A stretch of 64,000 nt of DNA from Basidiobolus meristosporus CBS 931.73 (GCA_002104905.1 MCFE01000148.1:1-64000); one strand, 5' to 3'. Positions 7,851 to 46,766 are shown, counted from the stretch's first letter. Program-made: numbers and translations. Notes: generated from the letters alone by a model not told the origin.

Positions 7851-10325
7851 GACACAACACCTAGAGTGTATGTCTAGTTGCGTATAAGAAGGCTGGAACT
7901 TGCAATATTGGTTATAACTTTGAGGAAAATTGGTTTTCTGCCGGTTATATGATGATATTCTACTGATATTTGGTAAGTTCTCTTTTGTAAGGTAGGTTTG
8001 ACGTCTACATAGGTCATTACTCTACTAATCATTTGAATTATGATCACTGACCAGAGTTTTGGTTTGTATAATGCTGACTAGTATTATAATTCTATGTAAT
8101 AATGAATATATTTTGTAGAAGTTACAGGCATATGTAATTTTGCTCAAAAGACCCTGTACTTTGCATATCACTTCCAGGAGGTTCTCTCAATACTCTGCCC
8201 TTATTACTTTAACAAAGCTCACAAGAGTATCAATATCTAATTTTGACTCAGTATATTAATAAGTAAAGTCTATCCATACTTCTAGCTATTCCATATCACC
8301 TTCAAACTCTCACTGTCACACTCAATAACTTCAAAATTGAACTTGGTTGAAACAATTCTAACAACCCTTTGTGCTCACCAATGGTAATCATTAATGAAAT
8401 ATAAACTGATGAGTGCGAAGAAGTGCCTTATACTGCACCAATGCTCTAACATGCTGAGCTAAAAAACTGCAATGTGGCTTTGACTACTCCTAGAGCTCTT
8501 CTTTTGATCGCAATTCCAGAAGTTAATGTTCATTGTGGTTCAAAAATTTCAAGGCGTCATGTGTATATTAACAAATTTAACAGCGAATTTAAGCTACTTG
8601 TGCACCTCCCTAAACAAGATCCTGTACACAAATGACTTGGAATTTCTCGAAGGGTCGAATACTTAGTGTATCATTCACATGGGGTTCTCACACTTGACGG
8701 TATTCTAAATGCATGCCATATCATTTCGAATCATCCAGAAGGACCACACTTCAAAATTCCTTTCCAGAGCTTTTCAGCACACAGTTACAAGCTAAACACA
8801 ACCAACGGTATAAATAGCACCTGCTACTATATATGGGAAATCAGCTCCAAGTACCAATTTCCACTTCGAATATACAAAAAATGCGAAAATATCCGTATAG
8901 GTGCACCTCCTTCAACCATACGTCAGGTCAGTATGAATGCCAAGAGATTTTTTAGTGTCTCAACGGAGATTACTTGCCACAAGTGTTAATAATATCCATG
9001 TTTGTTAAATATTATAAGCTACGCTATTTCGGAAATTTCCCTGGCATGTGTTAATCCTAGTAGTGTCACCGCCGAGCTTATATTTGTTGGTTGAACAGGC
9101 AAAATCTGCTTTTCTTTTGGCCCTAGAAACACCAATTCAAGAGTCGGATTCCTAGGCTAACACTTTGAGTGCTGTAAGAAGTAGAGGTGAGAGGCAGCGG
9201 CATCATGGTGCAAAGCTTGCACCAAGCGAATGCAGTATGAATCCACAATAAAAGGAAAGAAAAAATGTACTCATACTTTTGCCTGGGTCATTACGCTATG
9301 TTGGTAAAATACTAACTAGTAAATTAGGATTTCCAATGGAGATACTTAATGGCTTGAGGCCATTGCCCAATATGCAGGGACAACACCCAATATCCAGAGC
9401 AAAAAAAATAGAGAGCATTACTTGGGCATCTAATTGGATGGCAGAAAACCAAACTTGCCAGTCGTTAGCACCCAGTCATCACTCACCAAGCCCAAGCATG
9501 ACATCGATCTCGAAATTTGGTTCAAACCACTCGCTTTGTAGATATGTACGGCGGCCGTAAAGGATATCCAGCTCAATTGGTGTGCATTTAAGGTTCAGCT
9601 AACCTATCAGTTTGGATTTGAGATTCAGCATTGGAAGCGAACCTTGTACCACCGGAAAAAGGAGAGAGTTAGATTTGTTCCAAAAATGGCCGACCAATAA
9701 GGTTTTGGCTTTTCCAGTTATATTATTATATCGATCTAAGTGTCTCTCATGAGTTGCCAATAATGTTATAAATTGATGGTTTTGGTTGTCACACAAGGCC
9801 AGTAGTAACACTGACACCACCTGCGCCTTGAGGCGGAAGGCGGATTCCATGCATAGAAAAACACCTACGGCAAGAAGGCTGCATCGATAAAGTGATTCGG
9901 CATGTGCACCTCCTGAAGTTTTATTACATTCTGGAACAGGTAATCAATGAACATCGGATGTGCTGGATTGTCATTTGATTTACATACGTATTATACAACA
10001 CCATAAAGTTAACTTTAGCGCGATTATGCTTGTGAGCTGGCAGAGAAAGCACTGCCTTGACTTCGATGTACAGAGTTAAACAGATCAATGAACAGTGGGA
10101 TGTGACTGGATGCGTGGGATAAAACAACTGAGATGACTTCGATGGGTTAAGGTCTAGCTTACGTCGGTATCACGTAATCGTCTGAGCTATACATGCGCAT
10201 ATGATGTTTGGTGCTTGCTTTGTTACGAGGTTTCGTTGGAGATTTCGTCTATGGGGTGTCAACATCCAGTGTCGAATAGATTACTTTGGAACCAAACGTC
10301 CCGTGGTGTGCTCCGGAAAAGATGA

Positions 10326-40647: not shown

Positions 40648-41214
40648 ACTCCAGGTGTTGGGAAAGGCACCGTGGTGGCTGCATGTATGGCCATGATATG
40701 TTGCTCATTGATCAATAAACTGTATCTTGATGGGTTGTCTATATTTTGATGCGCGTTTTGGCATACAAATGTTGCGGGGGAAATGAATAGTGAAATCTGA
40801 TCCCGAGGCACGAGCTGTTTTCTGGGATACACTTAGATTGGTTCTTTGCAATTGTCGATTTATGCTGGGCTGTGTATATATATATATTTATATATGCGTA
40901 GAGGTAACGTTGTCTCGTCGCTTCAATATATGCATGTTCACCGCAACCGCAAACCCCAGCTCAACATCATACAATCAAGACTTAACATTACTCGATAGAT
41001 TGACTATTTTTTTGCTTAATGTAACATTTGTGCTACCTCACCTCTTAGTTATTCTAAAGGCTGAAATTGCCCACTCATCCGTGTAAAGTAGATCTATGGT
41101 GCTCCAAAATTCACTTAAAATTTTGTGGGGTAGGAATGCGGAGCTAGAACAAAATCATATCTGATTTATCGTATGAACGGAACCTTGACCCATTCAACAA
41201 TATTCGGCACTTTC

Positions 41215-42093
41215 ATGTTTGTTGGAAGGAAAGGATTCCTAGCTTTGGGGGGAGCTCGTTGTCGGTCCTTTTGTACAAGAAGCCCCTTATTTTCGGCACA
41301 TATAGTGAAGGTATAAAGAGCTCAAGCCATCTTGAACATTGGAAGGAACTAAATCTCACCTTACTCTTATTTAAAGATAGAGGCTCCACTTGGAATAGGA
41401 AGTGGGACTATTGCCCGGAATTTAGCAAAGAAAACCCATTATCAATACATTCCCGTGCTGGAAGTTATGAAAGCTATCGTGTTTAAAGTTGTTTTACAGC
41501 TCATTCATCAGCTGCTCCTTCTTCTAATGTTCAACTTTTTAACCCAGGCCACAAACAAATCCCCAACTACCAAACAATTACAGCATCCCGAGAGAATCCT
41601 TCACTTCATTAAGAATTCCGAGGTTGATTGTATTCATGATCCAAAGTTAGATTACAAGATCATCGTGAATAATGATGATCTCACAACAGCCGCTGTTGGA
41701 TTGAAGGCTCTTGCTGTTCTTACTAAACGACTCCAGGAGAACCCTCTGGTTCAGAAGGAATTACTTGACCGTGTTACTCGGGTCATTTGTGAACATGAAG
41801 CTCAAGGAGTAGTTTTTTCAACGTACATGACAAAACTTCAAGTACCTTCTGATGTCTCGATATTTCTTCAAGCAGATATAGAAACCCGAGTGAAAATGGA
41901 ACTTCGTAGAGCCAAAACAAAGAATTTGCTTCTCGATTCTTCCCAAATTCGCAGGAGCCTATTGCATCACGACGAGATCAGTGGTGTGGCTAGTAAACTT
42001 CGCAATAGCACTCACACGTTAGATATATCAAATATGAAGTTGGCACATATCATTCACAAATGTCAAGAAATCATTAAGGCGTCAAACAAATAG
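41215..42093 (+). CDS. Bacterial-type cytidylate kinase (Cmk)-fold protein with degenerate active site and putative mitochondrial presequence; exons 41215-41310, 41377-41487, 41548-42093
   Basis: Two phase-0 GT..AG introns (66 and 60 nt) give ...HIVKIEAPLGIGSGTIARNLAKKTHYQYIP...IIVNNDDLT...NPLVQKELL...SDVSIFLQADIETRVKMELRR...HTLDISNMKLAHIIHKCQEII, colinear with Cmk. An in-frame ATG also exists at 41173. Confidence 0.75.
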
Positions 42094-42199
42094 AATTTTA
42101 CTGACACCCAAGAGACACTTGTCTGAACCATCTCTCCTATAGTCAATGCTGATTCTTGGGGCGCCGCCAATAATATATGCTGCATTAGAATATCATTCA

Positions 42200-42520
42200 C
42201 ATTATGTACAGTCAATAAAAACAGTATTCATCTTCCATGAATTTCACTTTACAGAAGCAATGACCATTTGTGGAGCAGACAGAGCTGCAATATTGGGTGT
42301 CTTACAGATGAATGCAGGTACGCTTACCTACTCAGATACTGGTACACGTGGCATCACAGCTTATTACTTTCATCGAGGCTATGAGACTTGCTTGGGTGGA
42401 GAGCACATTGATGCATTTATATTTTATGCAGCTAGCACTCTATAGTGACGTGCAGTTAGGGTGCTGGAATGGGCATCCAGTAACACAAGGCTTCATCTCT
42501 TGTAACCAAACTATACATTG
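42200..42520 (+). pseudogene. Possible highly diverged Hsp70-family ATPase-domain fragment
   Basis: IFHEFHFTEAMTICG...ILGVLQMNAGTLTYS...GYETCLGGEHID parallels IINEPTAAAIAYG...VLVFDLGGGTFDVS...GDTHLGGEDFD in spacing; stops follow. Confidence 0.35.
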
Positions 42521-45479
42521 AAAAATAGAACCATTCTATTGAATGAGCACATATCTGGGAAAGTGAGTGAAATGCACTGGCCAACTTCAGAATAGGACTG
42601 GGAAGTTCTCATGCTTTGATGCCAATTGTCTTCTCAATGCTATTTCAAAAGACTACTAACAGCTGTTCAATGATTCTACCACTGGAAAAAACTTCAGCAA
42701 AAATTCGGATTATTGATCTCTGACTGGCAGTCAAGCCTTGCCACATAATAGTAAAACCATATTCTTTCTGGTATCATTTGAGATTGCCAATATCAAGATT
42801 TTAAACATGACATTTTTAGTGCAATTCCTTGTCTCTGATCCTTCGAGTTGAGAATTGTCACTCAAGCCAAAGTTATGATTTTTGTTGTTTCCCAGCTATT
42901 CCCATGCGTACTCTTGCGCACCGTCTCAATATCTCAATACATAACGCAACACATTTCAAGACAACCTCATGACAATGGCTCATATACAATGTTGCTGCTT
43001 TCCACTCATATTAGTGACTGTGCTGATAATGTTCACTCCAACTGCGAATATGTACCAATGTCACACAAAAGTAAATAATGCAATTTGCACTATCCTGATA
43101 ATGTATATTTGGTTTGGATGAAGCATGTTTGACATTAGCAAGATGTGGCTATGGTCCTAAAGTATTTTTTAAAAGGAGACCTGGACGCAATATGAGCCTG
43201 GGCACATATTTCGTAGAAAGGTAGGGATGCCATATGAAATTAATAAAAATCCAAGCTTTGTTACACATACAACTTGAAAATAAGGATTGGCGTTTTCTCG
43301 GGGCATATTAGAAACACGGGATTTAAACAGACTCTTGCACATACAACCCATGTACGAAATACGAAACCTAGTCATTTACATTTCTCAATGGTTCGAGTTA
43401 TGCAAAATATCTTGCTACTAGGGGACTGGAAAAAGGTAGGAATGCCAGCAAAAGATGTATCAAATTCACATTAGTAATTTTTTGAAGGGTGGGCATACGA
43501 GGTGGAACGTTGGTTTCAAATTGATATATGAAACAATTAGAAAATACACATGCTCATTGCAGAACGTCGTAAACGCTTAATCTCCAAGGTAGACGAAAAG
43601 GCACCAAGCTATGCACTTCTCTTTGAAAGAGATTTTGTAACTGATTGTACGTAACTATCCATCCGAATTGACCAAGGATCGGACAGGGTTTAAAACATCA
43701 TAATACTTAGCCTGCGATCGTTTGGATGCTTCTTCAGAATTATGCATGCCACTGATCATAAGAACAATCGGGTTGGATGCGAATTATCTGAGCAATATTG
43801 TACCCATTGGAGAGGATCCCATGTTTTTTAAATAGCCAGACCACTGCTCTCACTCTCGTCAAGTTTCAGATGGCACCTCCCGCAGTTCGAACCACAGCCA
43901 TTGCCTTGGGTCAACATGGAATTCCTTATCTTCCGGTTGATCTTCGCTACGTAGGAATAATATACGCACCACATGAAATGTAGTAACAAGTCATGCGGAA
44001 ACATCCCTGTGCAATGGAGCTGATCTTATCCAAGCATGCATCATACGTGTTTGCAAAAGCAATAATCATTCCACCCTACACCCTACTAGATGTTGCATCC
44101 TTATCACTTTCAATTACGATTAACTCTAATATTCCGTAGGGTTACACGGAGCGAATAGGATCGAGAACTTGGAATTTTGAAGTCATCAGAGGATAGTGTA
44201 ATGTCTATAAGCGAGCTTGTCGATTTACTGAGTGAGAGTGGAGGGGCTTTTGTATCATTTGAATGATTCTCTCTTTGAACATTCCTGCATCCAATTGACA
44301 TTCGGCTGCATGGTGGCCTAGTTTAGAACTAGGTTTAGTTATCCGTGAGTAATGGGTTTACGAAGTACCCAGAGTCCAAATCTATGCCGAGCTTTTCATT
44401 TATCCCGGAATTCAGAAGAGATATTGAAAGCTTGAGAGTGAACCTAATCTCGCACTATTTAGCTAGATGTAAAAAACAAGCGAACAGTTGGGTGCGAAAC
44501 TACAGATGCTAGTTATCATCCAAGGGTAAAGTATTGGGATCTAGATGCAACGAATCATCTAAATATGTATGTGAATGTGGAAATTTCTACGCTTGCAGCT
44601 CTGTGCCCAGTGCCTACGAAAAAAATCCATGCCCTACCATGATTGTTTCAGAGGATGGAAGCCTCCACCAAACCTCAAGCCCATTGAGCTGGCTATCTTA
44701 CGGCGATCCCAACATGGGAGATTGGGATTTTCAATCTTATATGGAAGCCGATTTCTCCAAGACCCCTGAGCATCCATCCTACAGAAAACACCTACGCTCC
44801 CTCACCAATGGAAAAGCCGGCTCAAGGAAAGTTTCAGTTGTGTGTGCGTTCCATTCCAGATCGGTAGTGCAGCATCGGGCTCCTCTGACAGCGATTGAGA
44901 AAGCCGGCCCTCATCCAGATGGAGGACGCTCGATTACGCTTGGAGAGTAGGTACACTATCTGATGAGAACGTGCGAGTGGAACCAATATTTGTTACGAGA
45001 AACCATTGTTCAACACCCATGCAGAATCACCCCACCTCATCGATATTGGGATAGAAGTAAGGGACCTCTTGACTTAGGTCATGTCCGACGCTCCCGCTAC
45101 ACAGAGGGGCCTGATCAAACGGACAGCGAGACGTCTGTGTAAAACGCCCATCAGTAACGTGTGTGCCCATGAATCCAGGGTGGTACACTGAGAGTCCTCG
45201 ATCAATAGCCATCTGGATGGGATATGGCAAATCAAAATTTTTCTAGCATATATGCAGCCCTCGAGATTATTAATGTAGATAAGATGCCAATGAATATTCT
45301 TGACCTGTTTCATTTGGGGACCAATTGCGATGGCCTTGGTTGATACGGTGCGCTACATGCCACCCAATTCCTTTATAAAGGCCGTTCCTTCCGGACACAT
45401 CAAGAGGCTCCGGTGCTTTCCCATTCTGAGCCGATCTCAAGCATCAAATTCCACCACTTTCCAGACTTCGCTACGAAGT

Positions 45480-46766
45480 ATGAGATGCGACAATCCGTTG
45501 AGTCAGGTCATGATACTGGGCTTGATCTGCTGCTTCGTTGTGGGCGTCTATAACGTCTACTATGGTATTGGAACCCTGGGGAAGATGAGCGCCAGTGATT
45601 CCCGACGTGTGAATATAGCGCTTTATGCTACATGCGCAGTATGCAGCACCTTTGCAGGTTCGATTAACAATCTACTTGGCCCACGGATTTCTCTGATACT
45701 GGCAGGGCTGACCTACATTTTGTATGTATTCATCCTCTGGGCCTTTACCCGCATTGCCAATGCTGCCCTGACGATTGTCGGTGCGGTGATTGTGGGCTTT
45801 GGCTCTGCTCTACTGTGGGCCACTGTTGGCATGATCATCACTTCGTACCCGACGGAGAACCAAAAGGGGCGTTTCTTCGGTATCTTTTGGATCCTTTTTA
45901 ATATTGGTGCCTTTGTTGGAGGGTTTCTCCCGTTGCTGGACTTCAACTTTCAGGTTGTCACAATCAGTTTTATTAGCCTCATGGTCTGTGGGCTGTTCCT
46001 TATTCTCTTTCTAATTCCCTCCGCACAGGTGATCCGTGAAGATGGATCACGAGTCACCTCTAAAACGGGGTTCCGTCTTTCGCATGAGCTGCGCCAGCTG
46101 CTACGAGCTATCACCAACCGCAAACTCCTTCTGTTATGGCCTATATTCCTTTACTCCAATTGGTTTTACAGCTATAGATTCGGCGATCTCAATGTCACCT
46201 TCTTTACCCCAAGAACACGAACCTTTAATAATATCTTTTACTGGGCATCGCAGATGCTGGGTGCCTTCACTTTCGGCCAATTCCTGGACAACCCGCTTAT
46301 GTGTCGGTCAAAACGAGCCACGCTAGGGCTCGGGTTTATATTCCTGTTCTTCACCGCTTCATGGCTGGGCTGCCTGGTTGTCGAGATCAAAGACTTCATG
46401 GATGTGGACGTGCTGGACGACCAGTATGCAAGGTTTCTGGTGCTGTTTCTTCTCTCAGGATTCTCGGATGCCATGATCCAGACGTGGTGCTACTGGATCA
46501 TAGGCACCTTGACCAATAATGCGATGATCTTGTCTCGCTACTCAGGGATATATAAGGCCATCCAATCTGCGGGCACTGCCATCTCATGGTACTTGGATGC
46601 TACTTCCGTGGCTCCTACCGCTGTCGTTGGCATCAACTGGGCCCTCCTGTATATTGGAACCATTTTTGCATATATGATAGCACGCAAAGTGAGTGATACC
46701 AATTACTCGTTTAGGGAGTCCATTCGTTCACCACCAGAGACCTACAACCAATCTCAAGAATCGTAG
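45480..46766 (+). CDS. UNC-93-like MFS membrane protein, intronless
   Basis: SQVMILGLICCFVVGVYN, NIALYA...GSINNLLGPR, GSALLWATVG...YPTENQKGRF.GIFWILFNIGAFVGG, SNWFYSY, TRTFNN, D...QTWCYWIIG.L, YKAIQSAG.AISW. ATG 45480 fits the family N-terminus better than the 45300 TTG. Confidence 0.9.
   Translation: MRCDNPLSQVMILGLICCFVVGVYNVYYGIGTLGKMSASDSRRVNIALYATCAVCSTFAGSINNLLGPRISLILAGLTYILYVFILWAFTRIANAALTIVGAVIVGFGSALLWATVGMIITSYPTENQKGRFFGIFWILFNIGAFVGGFLPLLDFNFQVVTISFISLMVCGLFLILFLIPSAQVIREDGSRVTSKTGFRLSHELRQLLRAITNRKLLLLWPIFLYSNWFYSYRFGDLNVTFFTPRTRTFNNIFYWASQMLGAFTFGQFLDNPLMCRSKRATLGLGFIFLFFTASWLGCLVVEIKDFMDVDVLDDQYARFLVLFLLSGFSDAMIQTWCYWIIGTLTNNAMILSRYSGIYKAIQSAGTAISWYLDATSVAPTAVVGINWALLYIGTIFAYMIARKVSDTNYSFRESIRSPPETYNQSQES

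Follow-up and report, generated by a model that had tools for sequence, protein, structure and literature searches.

The cytidylate kinases of bacteria (Cmk, type 1; EC 2.7.4.25; PF02224 and TIGR00017) are represented by the structures from E. coli (1CKE/2CMK) and M. smegmatis (3R20). The usual UMP-CMP kinase of eukaryotes is adenylate-kinase-like. A eukaryotic protein of the Cmk type is the cytidylate kinase of Encephalitozoon cuniculi (7l4a), which has CDP in its crystal structure and goes by the name of a kinase. In metazoan complex I, NDUFA10 is a catalytically dead kinase-fold protein of the deoxyribonucleoside-kinase (dNK) family that was recruited into a mitochondrial complex. The cytidylate kinase of Trachipleistophora hominis is a candidate for lateral gene transfer from bacteria (PMC3486916), and a bacterial source, through horizontal gene transfer, has also been proposed for a 'Cytidylate kinase-like family' in Neocallimastigomycota, the anaerobic gut fungi (bioRxiv 10.1101/487215). 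According to published work, Basidiobolus has acquired many genes from bacteria (PMC7466969). Here we describe a gene from Basidiobolus meristosporus CBS 931.73 (GCA_002104905.1), located at 41215–42093 of a 64 000-nucleotide stretch (MCFE01000148.1:1–64000), which is referred to below as the window. This gene, termed A, encodes a protein with the Cmk fold and without most of the Cmk active-site residues. Together with a paralog, B, it appears to represent a conserved pseudoenzyme.

The A gene has three exons on the plus strand that splice into 753 nt, i.e., 250 codons and a stop, as read from the sequence and checked by script (Table 1). A sequence-only reading of the same DNA had proposed a hidden three-exon gene of about 250 amino acids here, and its exon and intron coordinates proved exact. 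Both of its phase-0 introns (41311–41376 and 41488–41547) have GT..AG ends, at positions that are kept in four genes. 'Hidden' is also a fair word, since the public annotation of GCA_002104905.1 has no gene call between a Promethin-family gene (end ~40647) and an UNC-93 gene (45480). Intron 2 is in frame and contains no stop; therefore, a mechanical list of open reading frames (ORFs) gives only the fragment 41455–42093. If retained, this intron would add a very hydrophobic stretch of 20 residues, VVLQLIHQLLLLLMFNFLTQ. When the protein database was searched by words with a piece of the window protein, the protein itself was absent. On comparative evidence, from which its transcription and splicing are deduced, the A gene is a real nuclear gene of the expressed type that the annotators of the B. 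meristosporus genome overlooked.

The closest relative, and the one close match in the word-based search, was K7432_009634 of B. ranarum (P0001, 250 amino acids). It aligned with the spliced window product without gaps, 164 of 251 positions being identical (65%). When aligned with the read-through translation, it left a single gap of 20 residues, exactly at intron 2. The introns of the B. ranarum gene interrupt the same codons, both in phase 0; with lengths of 68 and 61 nt, they do not allow read-through and must be spliced. The two loci are collinear, with Promethin-like, UNC-93/MFS, and ThiF neighbours.

The relationship to Cmk was examined with profiles. Exons 2 and 3, read through intron 2, matched Pfam Cytidylate_kin (PF02224) with an E value of 6e-8 and a score of 33 bits, the cut-off being 26, and exon 3 alone gave 18.2 bits. 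The cmk equivalog of NCBIfam, TIGR00017, matched from end to end (E 2e-6), but its score of 27.8 bits lies far below the equivalog cut-off of 135.55. By these profiles the A protein is a homolog of the Cmk family, not an equivalog. When P0001 was searched against the sequences of the PDB, only cytidylate kinases were retrieved, the best being that of M. smegmatis (3R20, E 3e-6), followed by those of Yersinia and E. coli.

An AlphaFold2 model of P0001, built from an 81-sequence alignment, had a mean predicted local distance difference test (pLDDT) score of 88 and a predicted template modelling (pTM) score of 0.83, with residues 1–20 disordered. In a Foldseek comparison of this model with the PDB, the top 21 matches were all Cmk (E 1.7e-13 to 4e-7). 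A scan by VIA-align, which is independent of Foldseek, aligned five Cmk structures over 203–211 residues at Z 19.1–21.5; the next families (gluconate, shikimate, and adenylate kinases) reached Z 13.4 at most. Feature and shape searches of the ESM Atlas returned bacterial PF02224 clusters only. In the modelled structure, the architecture specific to Cmk is thus kept, including the insert that binds nucleoside monophosphate (NMP), beyond the generic core of P-loop kinases. A Cmk fold had been recognised by eye in the sequence-only reading. It is borne out by PF02224 above cut-off, by the Foldseek ranking, and by Z scores of 19–21.5 as against ~13. A best match to another P-loop family, or to none, was not found, Cmk being first in both profile and structure comparisons. 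The best structural matches of the model in Foldseek and VIA-align included no subunit of any mitochondrial complex.

The active site was compared motif by motif, using HMMER alignments to 3R20, 4E22, and 1CKE and a MAFFT alignment with the bacterial matches (81 sequences, 77 of them bacterial). The bacterial P-loop GPAGxGK(S/G)T reads APLGIGSGT in the window protein, the Walker-A Lys being replaced by Ser. DTGAMYR (DxGxxYR) is replaced by IPVLEVMK, the VR arginine by VQ (in VQK), EGRDIGT (GRD) by FSTYMT, the LID sequence ERARRR by TRVKME, and RDxxDSxR by HHDEISG. The replaced positions, including that of the Walker-A Lys, are at least 90% conserved across the alignment. The only residues invariant in all 81 sequences, the fungal ones included, are the first LID Arg (ETR) and, in the P-loop, the Gly that precedes the position of the Lys. 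The Asp equivalent to the RD aspartate is also retained in the window protein. The dead P-loop (Lys to Ser) and the absence of DxGxxYR and DGRD, as the sequence-only reading had described them, were thus confirmed in the alignment. That reading also had the LID arginines replaced by RVKME; most of them are indeed gone, but the first is the invariant one just named. The A protein therefore resembles bacterial Cmk in its fold over ~210 residues, its NMP insert, its similar length, a homology still detectable by sequence, and the invariant Gly and LID Arg. It differs in the Lys to Ser change, in the loss of DxGxxYR, GRD, and RDxxDxxR, in a leader of ~25 residues, in two spliceosomal introns, and in a mature isoelectric point (pI) of ~9.4.

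The rates of change were compared between the two orthologs. The exons of the A pair are 67% identical in nucleotides, as against ~50–55% of aligned columns for introns and flanks; for intron 1, 42 of 76 aligned columns match. Exon 2 is the best-conserved segment, with 84% identity, and exon 1 has a high rate of nonsynonymous change (dN 0.43), with 44% identity in the leader. The ratio of nonsynonymous to synonymous change (dN/dS) was 0.07 (NG86), 0.14 (LWL85), or 0.12 (maximum likelihood), dS being saturated. These comparisons indicate that the A gene is under strong purifying selection and that it is functional and no pseudogene. The sequence-only reading had foreseen a mere pseudogene if orthologs kept GK[ST] while this copy evolved neutrally; the ortholog in fact has the GSGT P-loop, and dN/dS is 0.07–0.14. 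Because the segment with the P-loop is the best-conserved part of A, the old phosphate-binding site has probably kept some importance, whether in holding an anionic ligand or in contacting a partner.

A second member of the family was retrieved when P0001 was used in an exhaustive HMMER search. It was P0002 (E 2.6e-14, 31% identity), the only further one below 1e-10, and ordinary bacterial Cmk followed from 1.5e-9 downward with ~20–29% identity. P0002 is ORY01216.1 of B. meristosporus, encoded on contig MCFE01000072.1. It was considered as a displaced ortholog of A; this was ruled out, as its neighbours differ from those of the A locus. Lying on another contig among unrelated genes, it is hence a paralog, the B form. 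Its ortholog in B. ranarum, P0115, is 77% identical to it by BLASTP and has the same PX and Mis12 neighbours as in B. meristosporus. A and B are ~30% identical and their loci are non-syntenic. All four genes have two phase-0 introns at the same codons and an exon 2 of 111 nt. Intron 1 measures 66 nt in the window, 68 in the B. ranarum A gene, and 62 and 66 in the B genes; intron 2 is 60 nt in the window and 61, 59, and 64 nt in the other three, where it cannot be read through.

The P-loop of B is more degenerate than that of A. It reads SSIKGGSFL, with Ser at the Lys position and the glycine pattern lost; YR and GRD are absent, and the LID sequence RARR is kept. Within each form, the loop motifs are identical between the two orthologs. 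The dN/dS of the B pair is 0.06–0.07, and the B model (pLDDT 87.8) also matches Cmk structures first. In an unrooted tree, the four proteins form one clade (99 in the Shimodaira–Hasegawa-like approximate likelihood ratio test, SH-aLRT) whose long stem measures 1.75 changes per site, A and B being ~4.4 changes per site apart. Thus, A and B share both intron positions, the 111-nt exon 2, the Lys to Ser change, an R-x-F-S/C-T leader, and the fold; A differs in keeping the glycine pattern and in its basic pI, and B in keeping RARR and in its near-neutral pI. Catalytic motifs have been lost in both paralogs of two species while dN/dS has stayed low. On this combination of lost motifs, purifying selection, two paralogs, and two species, we infer that the A protein is unable to transfer phosphate and is a conserved pseudoenzyme.

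The deposited B gene itself shows an irregularity. Its annotated third 'intron' (8392–8434, counted within the B locus on MCFE01000072.1) is only 43 nt long and seems to bridge a frameshift of 1 nt. Translation of this stretch in the +1 frame gives QFVKEAPIAVAPTSKFD, matching VQFVKETSITVAPISKFD of B. ranarum. The frameshift is either an assembly error or real. Since the 43-nt 'intron' skips the frame-shifted stretch, the deposited ORY01216.1 is without 14 residues of the NMP insert.

We examined the N termini of the four proteins, each of which has ~25 residues more than bacterial Cmk. The first 30 residues of the window protein contain five Arg or Lys, no Asp or Glu, and four Ser or Thr, the first acidic residue being at position 34. 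Across the four leaders there are 2–5 Arg or Lys, 4–7 Ser or Thr, and no acidic residue in the first 30. Each has an R-x-F-S/C-T motif (RSFCT in the window protein; RLFST, RSFST, and RSFST in the others), which resembles the R-3 and R-10 patterns of the matrix peptidases of yeast. The leader is disordered in both models (the A ortholog and B). In the A pair it evolves fast and yet keeps its composition and its R-x-F-S/C-T, in the manner of a presequence. The Arg-rich, acid-free start with an R-x-F|C-type site (RSF|CT), on which the sequence-only reading had based a mitochondrial presequence, was accordingly found as described. After the putative cut, the pI is 9.2–9.6 for A and 6.3–7.9 for B, the median of the bacterial matches being 6.75. 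The basic charge of A is weakly suggestive of contact with nucleic acid.

It may be asked whether such a pseudoenzyme acts in mitochondria at all. The N-terminal extension could be a disordered tail or some other signal, and the protein could reside in the cytosol or the nucleus. Localisation was judged from the composition of the leader and its motif, the amphipathic moment of the window leader is weak, and the upstream in-frame ATG might alter the N terminus. Set against this, a leader of ~25 residues that is not found in bacterial Cmk, and is otherwise poorly conserved, occurs in four of four proteins. All four leaders are free of acid in the first 30 residues and carry the R-x-F-S/C-T typical of matrix-peptidase sites, and the upstream extensions are acid-free too. 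We consider a non-mitochondrial pseudoenzyme unlikely, though worth keeping in view.

The distribution of the family was examined in searches over 1.8 billion protein representatives and 5.8 billion clusters, in which no other relative with these changes was found outside Basidiobolus. A profile of the four proteins, a search with P0002, and the word search with the window piece brought up no further protein of this kind. All named matches outside Basidiobolus are bacterial (d)CMP kinases. Ordinary bacterial Cmk with ~25% identity come nearest, the closest of all being metagenomic proteins, and the nearest ESM Atlas clusters belong to Bacillota and Verrucomicrobiota, not to Alphaproteobacteria. 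As the family is found only in Basidiobolus, horizontal acquisition is preferred over descent from the endosymbiont. Of the two origins left open by the sequence-only reading, endosymbiotic or horizontal, the second thus fits better, and a lineage-specific acquisition is, by this distribution, the more economical. PMC7466969 does not mention the A gene. Within the literature on horizontal transfer in Basidiobolus and fungi, and on cytidylate kinase in relation to mitochondria, pseudoenzymes, and the mitoribosome, no description of an A or B protein was found; neither the protein searches nor this literature yielded a characterised ortholog, the existence of which the sequence-only reading had allowed for.

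An origin in the endosymbiont that became the mitochondrion, or in a Cmk of early fungi like the one in Microsporidia, followed by loss in other lineages, has points in its favour. A bacterial-type Cmk does occur in E. cuniculi (7l4a), which is among the best structural matches of the Basidiobolus model (Z 21.0); the introns, the presequence, and the old duplication mean that the gene is not recent; and the long stem prevents its placement among bacteria. However, no other eukaryotic relative of the kind came up in the searches above, and 7l4a fails to reach E 1 in the PDB sequence search with P0001, which bacterial Cmk do match. The nearest clusters are not alphaproteobacterial. Endosymbiotic descent is less economical because it needs loss in nearly every other eukaryote. 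Moreover, the Basidiobolus proteins differ from 7l4a in missing the binding residues, in having a presequence-like leader, and in forming a long-branch clade of their own, in a tree that was built without the 7l4a sequence. Such a descent is, in our view, distinctly unlikely.

An enzyme that is still active was also considered, i.e., a (d)CMP kinase with a non-canonical P-loop that supplies CDP or dCDP inside mitochondria. The PF02224 score above cut-off, the whole fold with its NMP insert, and the persistence in A of the glycine-rich loop with its Thr, the invariant LID Arg, and the RD-equivalent Asp would all suit it, as would strong purifying selection. UniRef automatically names both B. 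ranarum proteins, P0001 and P0115, '(d)CMP kinase', despite the missing Walker-A Lys and substrate-binding residues; this name is probably an over-annotation. Both paralogs, however, have Ser in place of the Walker-A Lys; Tyr-Arg, GRD, and another three arginines that bind the substrate are replaced at positions at least 90% conserved in 77 bacterial sequences; the TIGR00017 score falls far short of its cut-off; and in the B form even the glycine pattern is gone. Normal phosphotransfer by a P-loop NMP kinase is incompatible with the combined loss of this Lys and of the arginines that bind the acceptor. With both gone here, normal phosphotransfer would be excluded, and an active kinase is very unlikely. 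Finally, a decaying pseudogene or chance ORF, skipped by annotators for that reason, is hardly credible: the missing gene call in GCA_002104905.1, the weak GTTGTT donor of intron 2, the AAG acceptor of intron 1, and the fact that no RNA run was listed for 41100–42300 would agree with it, but the 250-codon frame is intact and ungapped relative to its ortholog, dN/dS is ~0.1 with saturated dS, the exons are more alike than introns and flanks, the intron positions are kept in four genes, and the model is confident.

The account that we regard as likely is that A and B descend from an acquired bacterial cmk that was domesticated and duplicated, and that they are non-catalytic, probably mitochondrial proteins. 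On this account, a type 1 cmk would have entered an ancestor of Basidiobolus before the genus diversified. It would then have gained two spliceosomal introns and a presequence of mitochondrial type and lost the Walker-A Lys along with catalysis. Duplication into the basic A form and the near-neutral B form would have followed, and afterwards the split of B. meristosporus and B. ranarum. The protein would be imported into mitochondria, cleaved near R-x-F|S/C, and act by binding instead of catalysis. Its remnant P-loop probably continues to bind either another protein or something anionic, such as a nucleotide, a phosphate, or the backbone of RNA. The A protein may thus have an accessory or regulatory role peculiar to this lineage, perhaps one that it shares with its B paralog.

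Several points weigh against this account. The start codon of the A gene is uncertain, being either ATG 41215 or ATG 41173. The B. ranarum ortholog likewise has an in-frame ATG 18 codons upstream; the two candidate upstream extensions, neither of which has an acidic residue, are dissimilar except for a common TLT, and conserved sequence starts at MFV. Splicing is deduced from comparison across four genes, and the structural results belong to a model of a 65% identical ortholog that stands in for the window protein. The hydrophobic moment of the window leader is modest (0.35). A mitochondrial location is judged from the composition of the leader and the conserved R-x-F-S/C-T only, so that we hold it with fair confidence and no more. 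The G-x-G-S-G-T of the A form and its invariant LID Arg may allow residual nucleotide binding or an unusual activity. As to origin, the nearest matches are metagenomic, the tree is unrooted, and its deep branches are unsupported, so that no bacterial donor is named. Members of the family that lack annotation in other fungi would be missed when proteins are searched, just as the window gene was. None of the outcomes that would have spoken against the earlier interpretation was found where it was checked, and as a whole that interpretation is supported.

A more specific role is doubtful. A and B might be a pair of lineage-specific mitochondrial subunits, forming an accessory heterodimer of a mitoribosomal, respiratory, or nucleoid complex in which basic A contacts RNA or DNA through its remnant loop. 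If true, this would be a datable case of a bacterial gene that was horizontally transferred and whose product became a structural component of an organelle complex in a eukaryote. NDUFA10 offers a likeness as a concept, with its nucleotide-kinase fold, its presequence, and a non-catalytic role in mitochondria. It differs in kinase family (dNK as against Cmk) and in lineage, and membership of a complex is a feature of NDUFA10, the Basidiobolus protein being known from genes and a model.

The coordinates of the features in the window are collected in Table 1. The A gene lies within an interval of ~4.8 kb (40648–45479) that contains no public gene calls. In the same interval of B. ranarum, from Promethin to UNC-93/MFS, there are also genes for COX24_C (mS38) and SYS1, with the A gene between them. 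Counted within this locus, on JASJQH010000607.1, the COX24_C gene (mitoribosomal mS38 family) is at 466–926 and the A gene at 1431–2312, ~500 bp downstream on the same strand. Neither COX24_C nor SYS1 was detected around the A gene in the window by tblastn up to E 10, and hence no functional inference is drawn from the neighbourhood; the adjacency of COX24_C in B. ranarum may be a coincidence.

Table 1. Features of the A locus and its annotated neighbour in the window
Feature	Coordinates	Strand	Description
Candidate N-terminal extension	41173..41214	+	14 codons; upstream in-frame ATG; ORF 41173–41316 in the ORF list
Exon 1	41215..41310	+	32 codons; presequence-like N-terminal extension with RSF|CT, then residues leading into strand beta-1
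Intron 1	41311..41376	+	66 nt, phase 0, GT..AG (GTATAA...AAG)
Exon 2	41377..41487	+	37 codons, 111 nt; strand beta-1, degenerate P-loop APLGIGSGT, helix alpha-1, region replacing the DxGxxYR CMP-binding motif
Intron 2	41488..41547	+	60 nt, phase 0, GT..AG; weak GTTGTT donor, CAG acceptor; in frame, stop-free
Exon 3	41548..42093	+	181 codons and stop; NMP-binding insert, core strands, LID remnant ETRVKMELRR, C-terminal helix
UNC-93/MFS protein gene	45480–46763		428 amino acids

Fungi are already known to have pseudoenzymes as well as genes acquired from bacteria. The unusual feature of the present case is that a bacterial-type Cmk gained introns and a leader, lost its chemistry, was duplicated, and stayed under tight selection, for which no prior description was found. 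The annotation of B. meristosporus is corrected in two places, i.e., the missing A gene and the frameshift in paralog B that is bridged by a 43-nt 'intron', and the automatic '(d)CMP kinase' names of the B. ranarum orthologs are probably wrong. As members of the family have so far come from a single genus, its wider importance is moderate. Within that scope, the A/B family is a small and tractable case for asking why a kinase fold persists once catalysis is gone.

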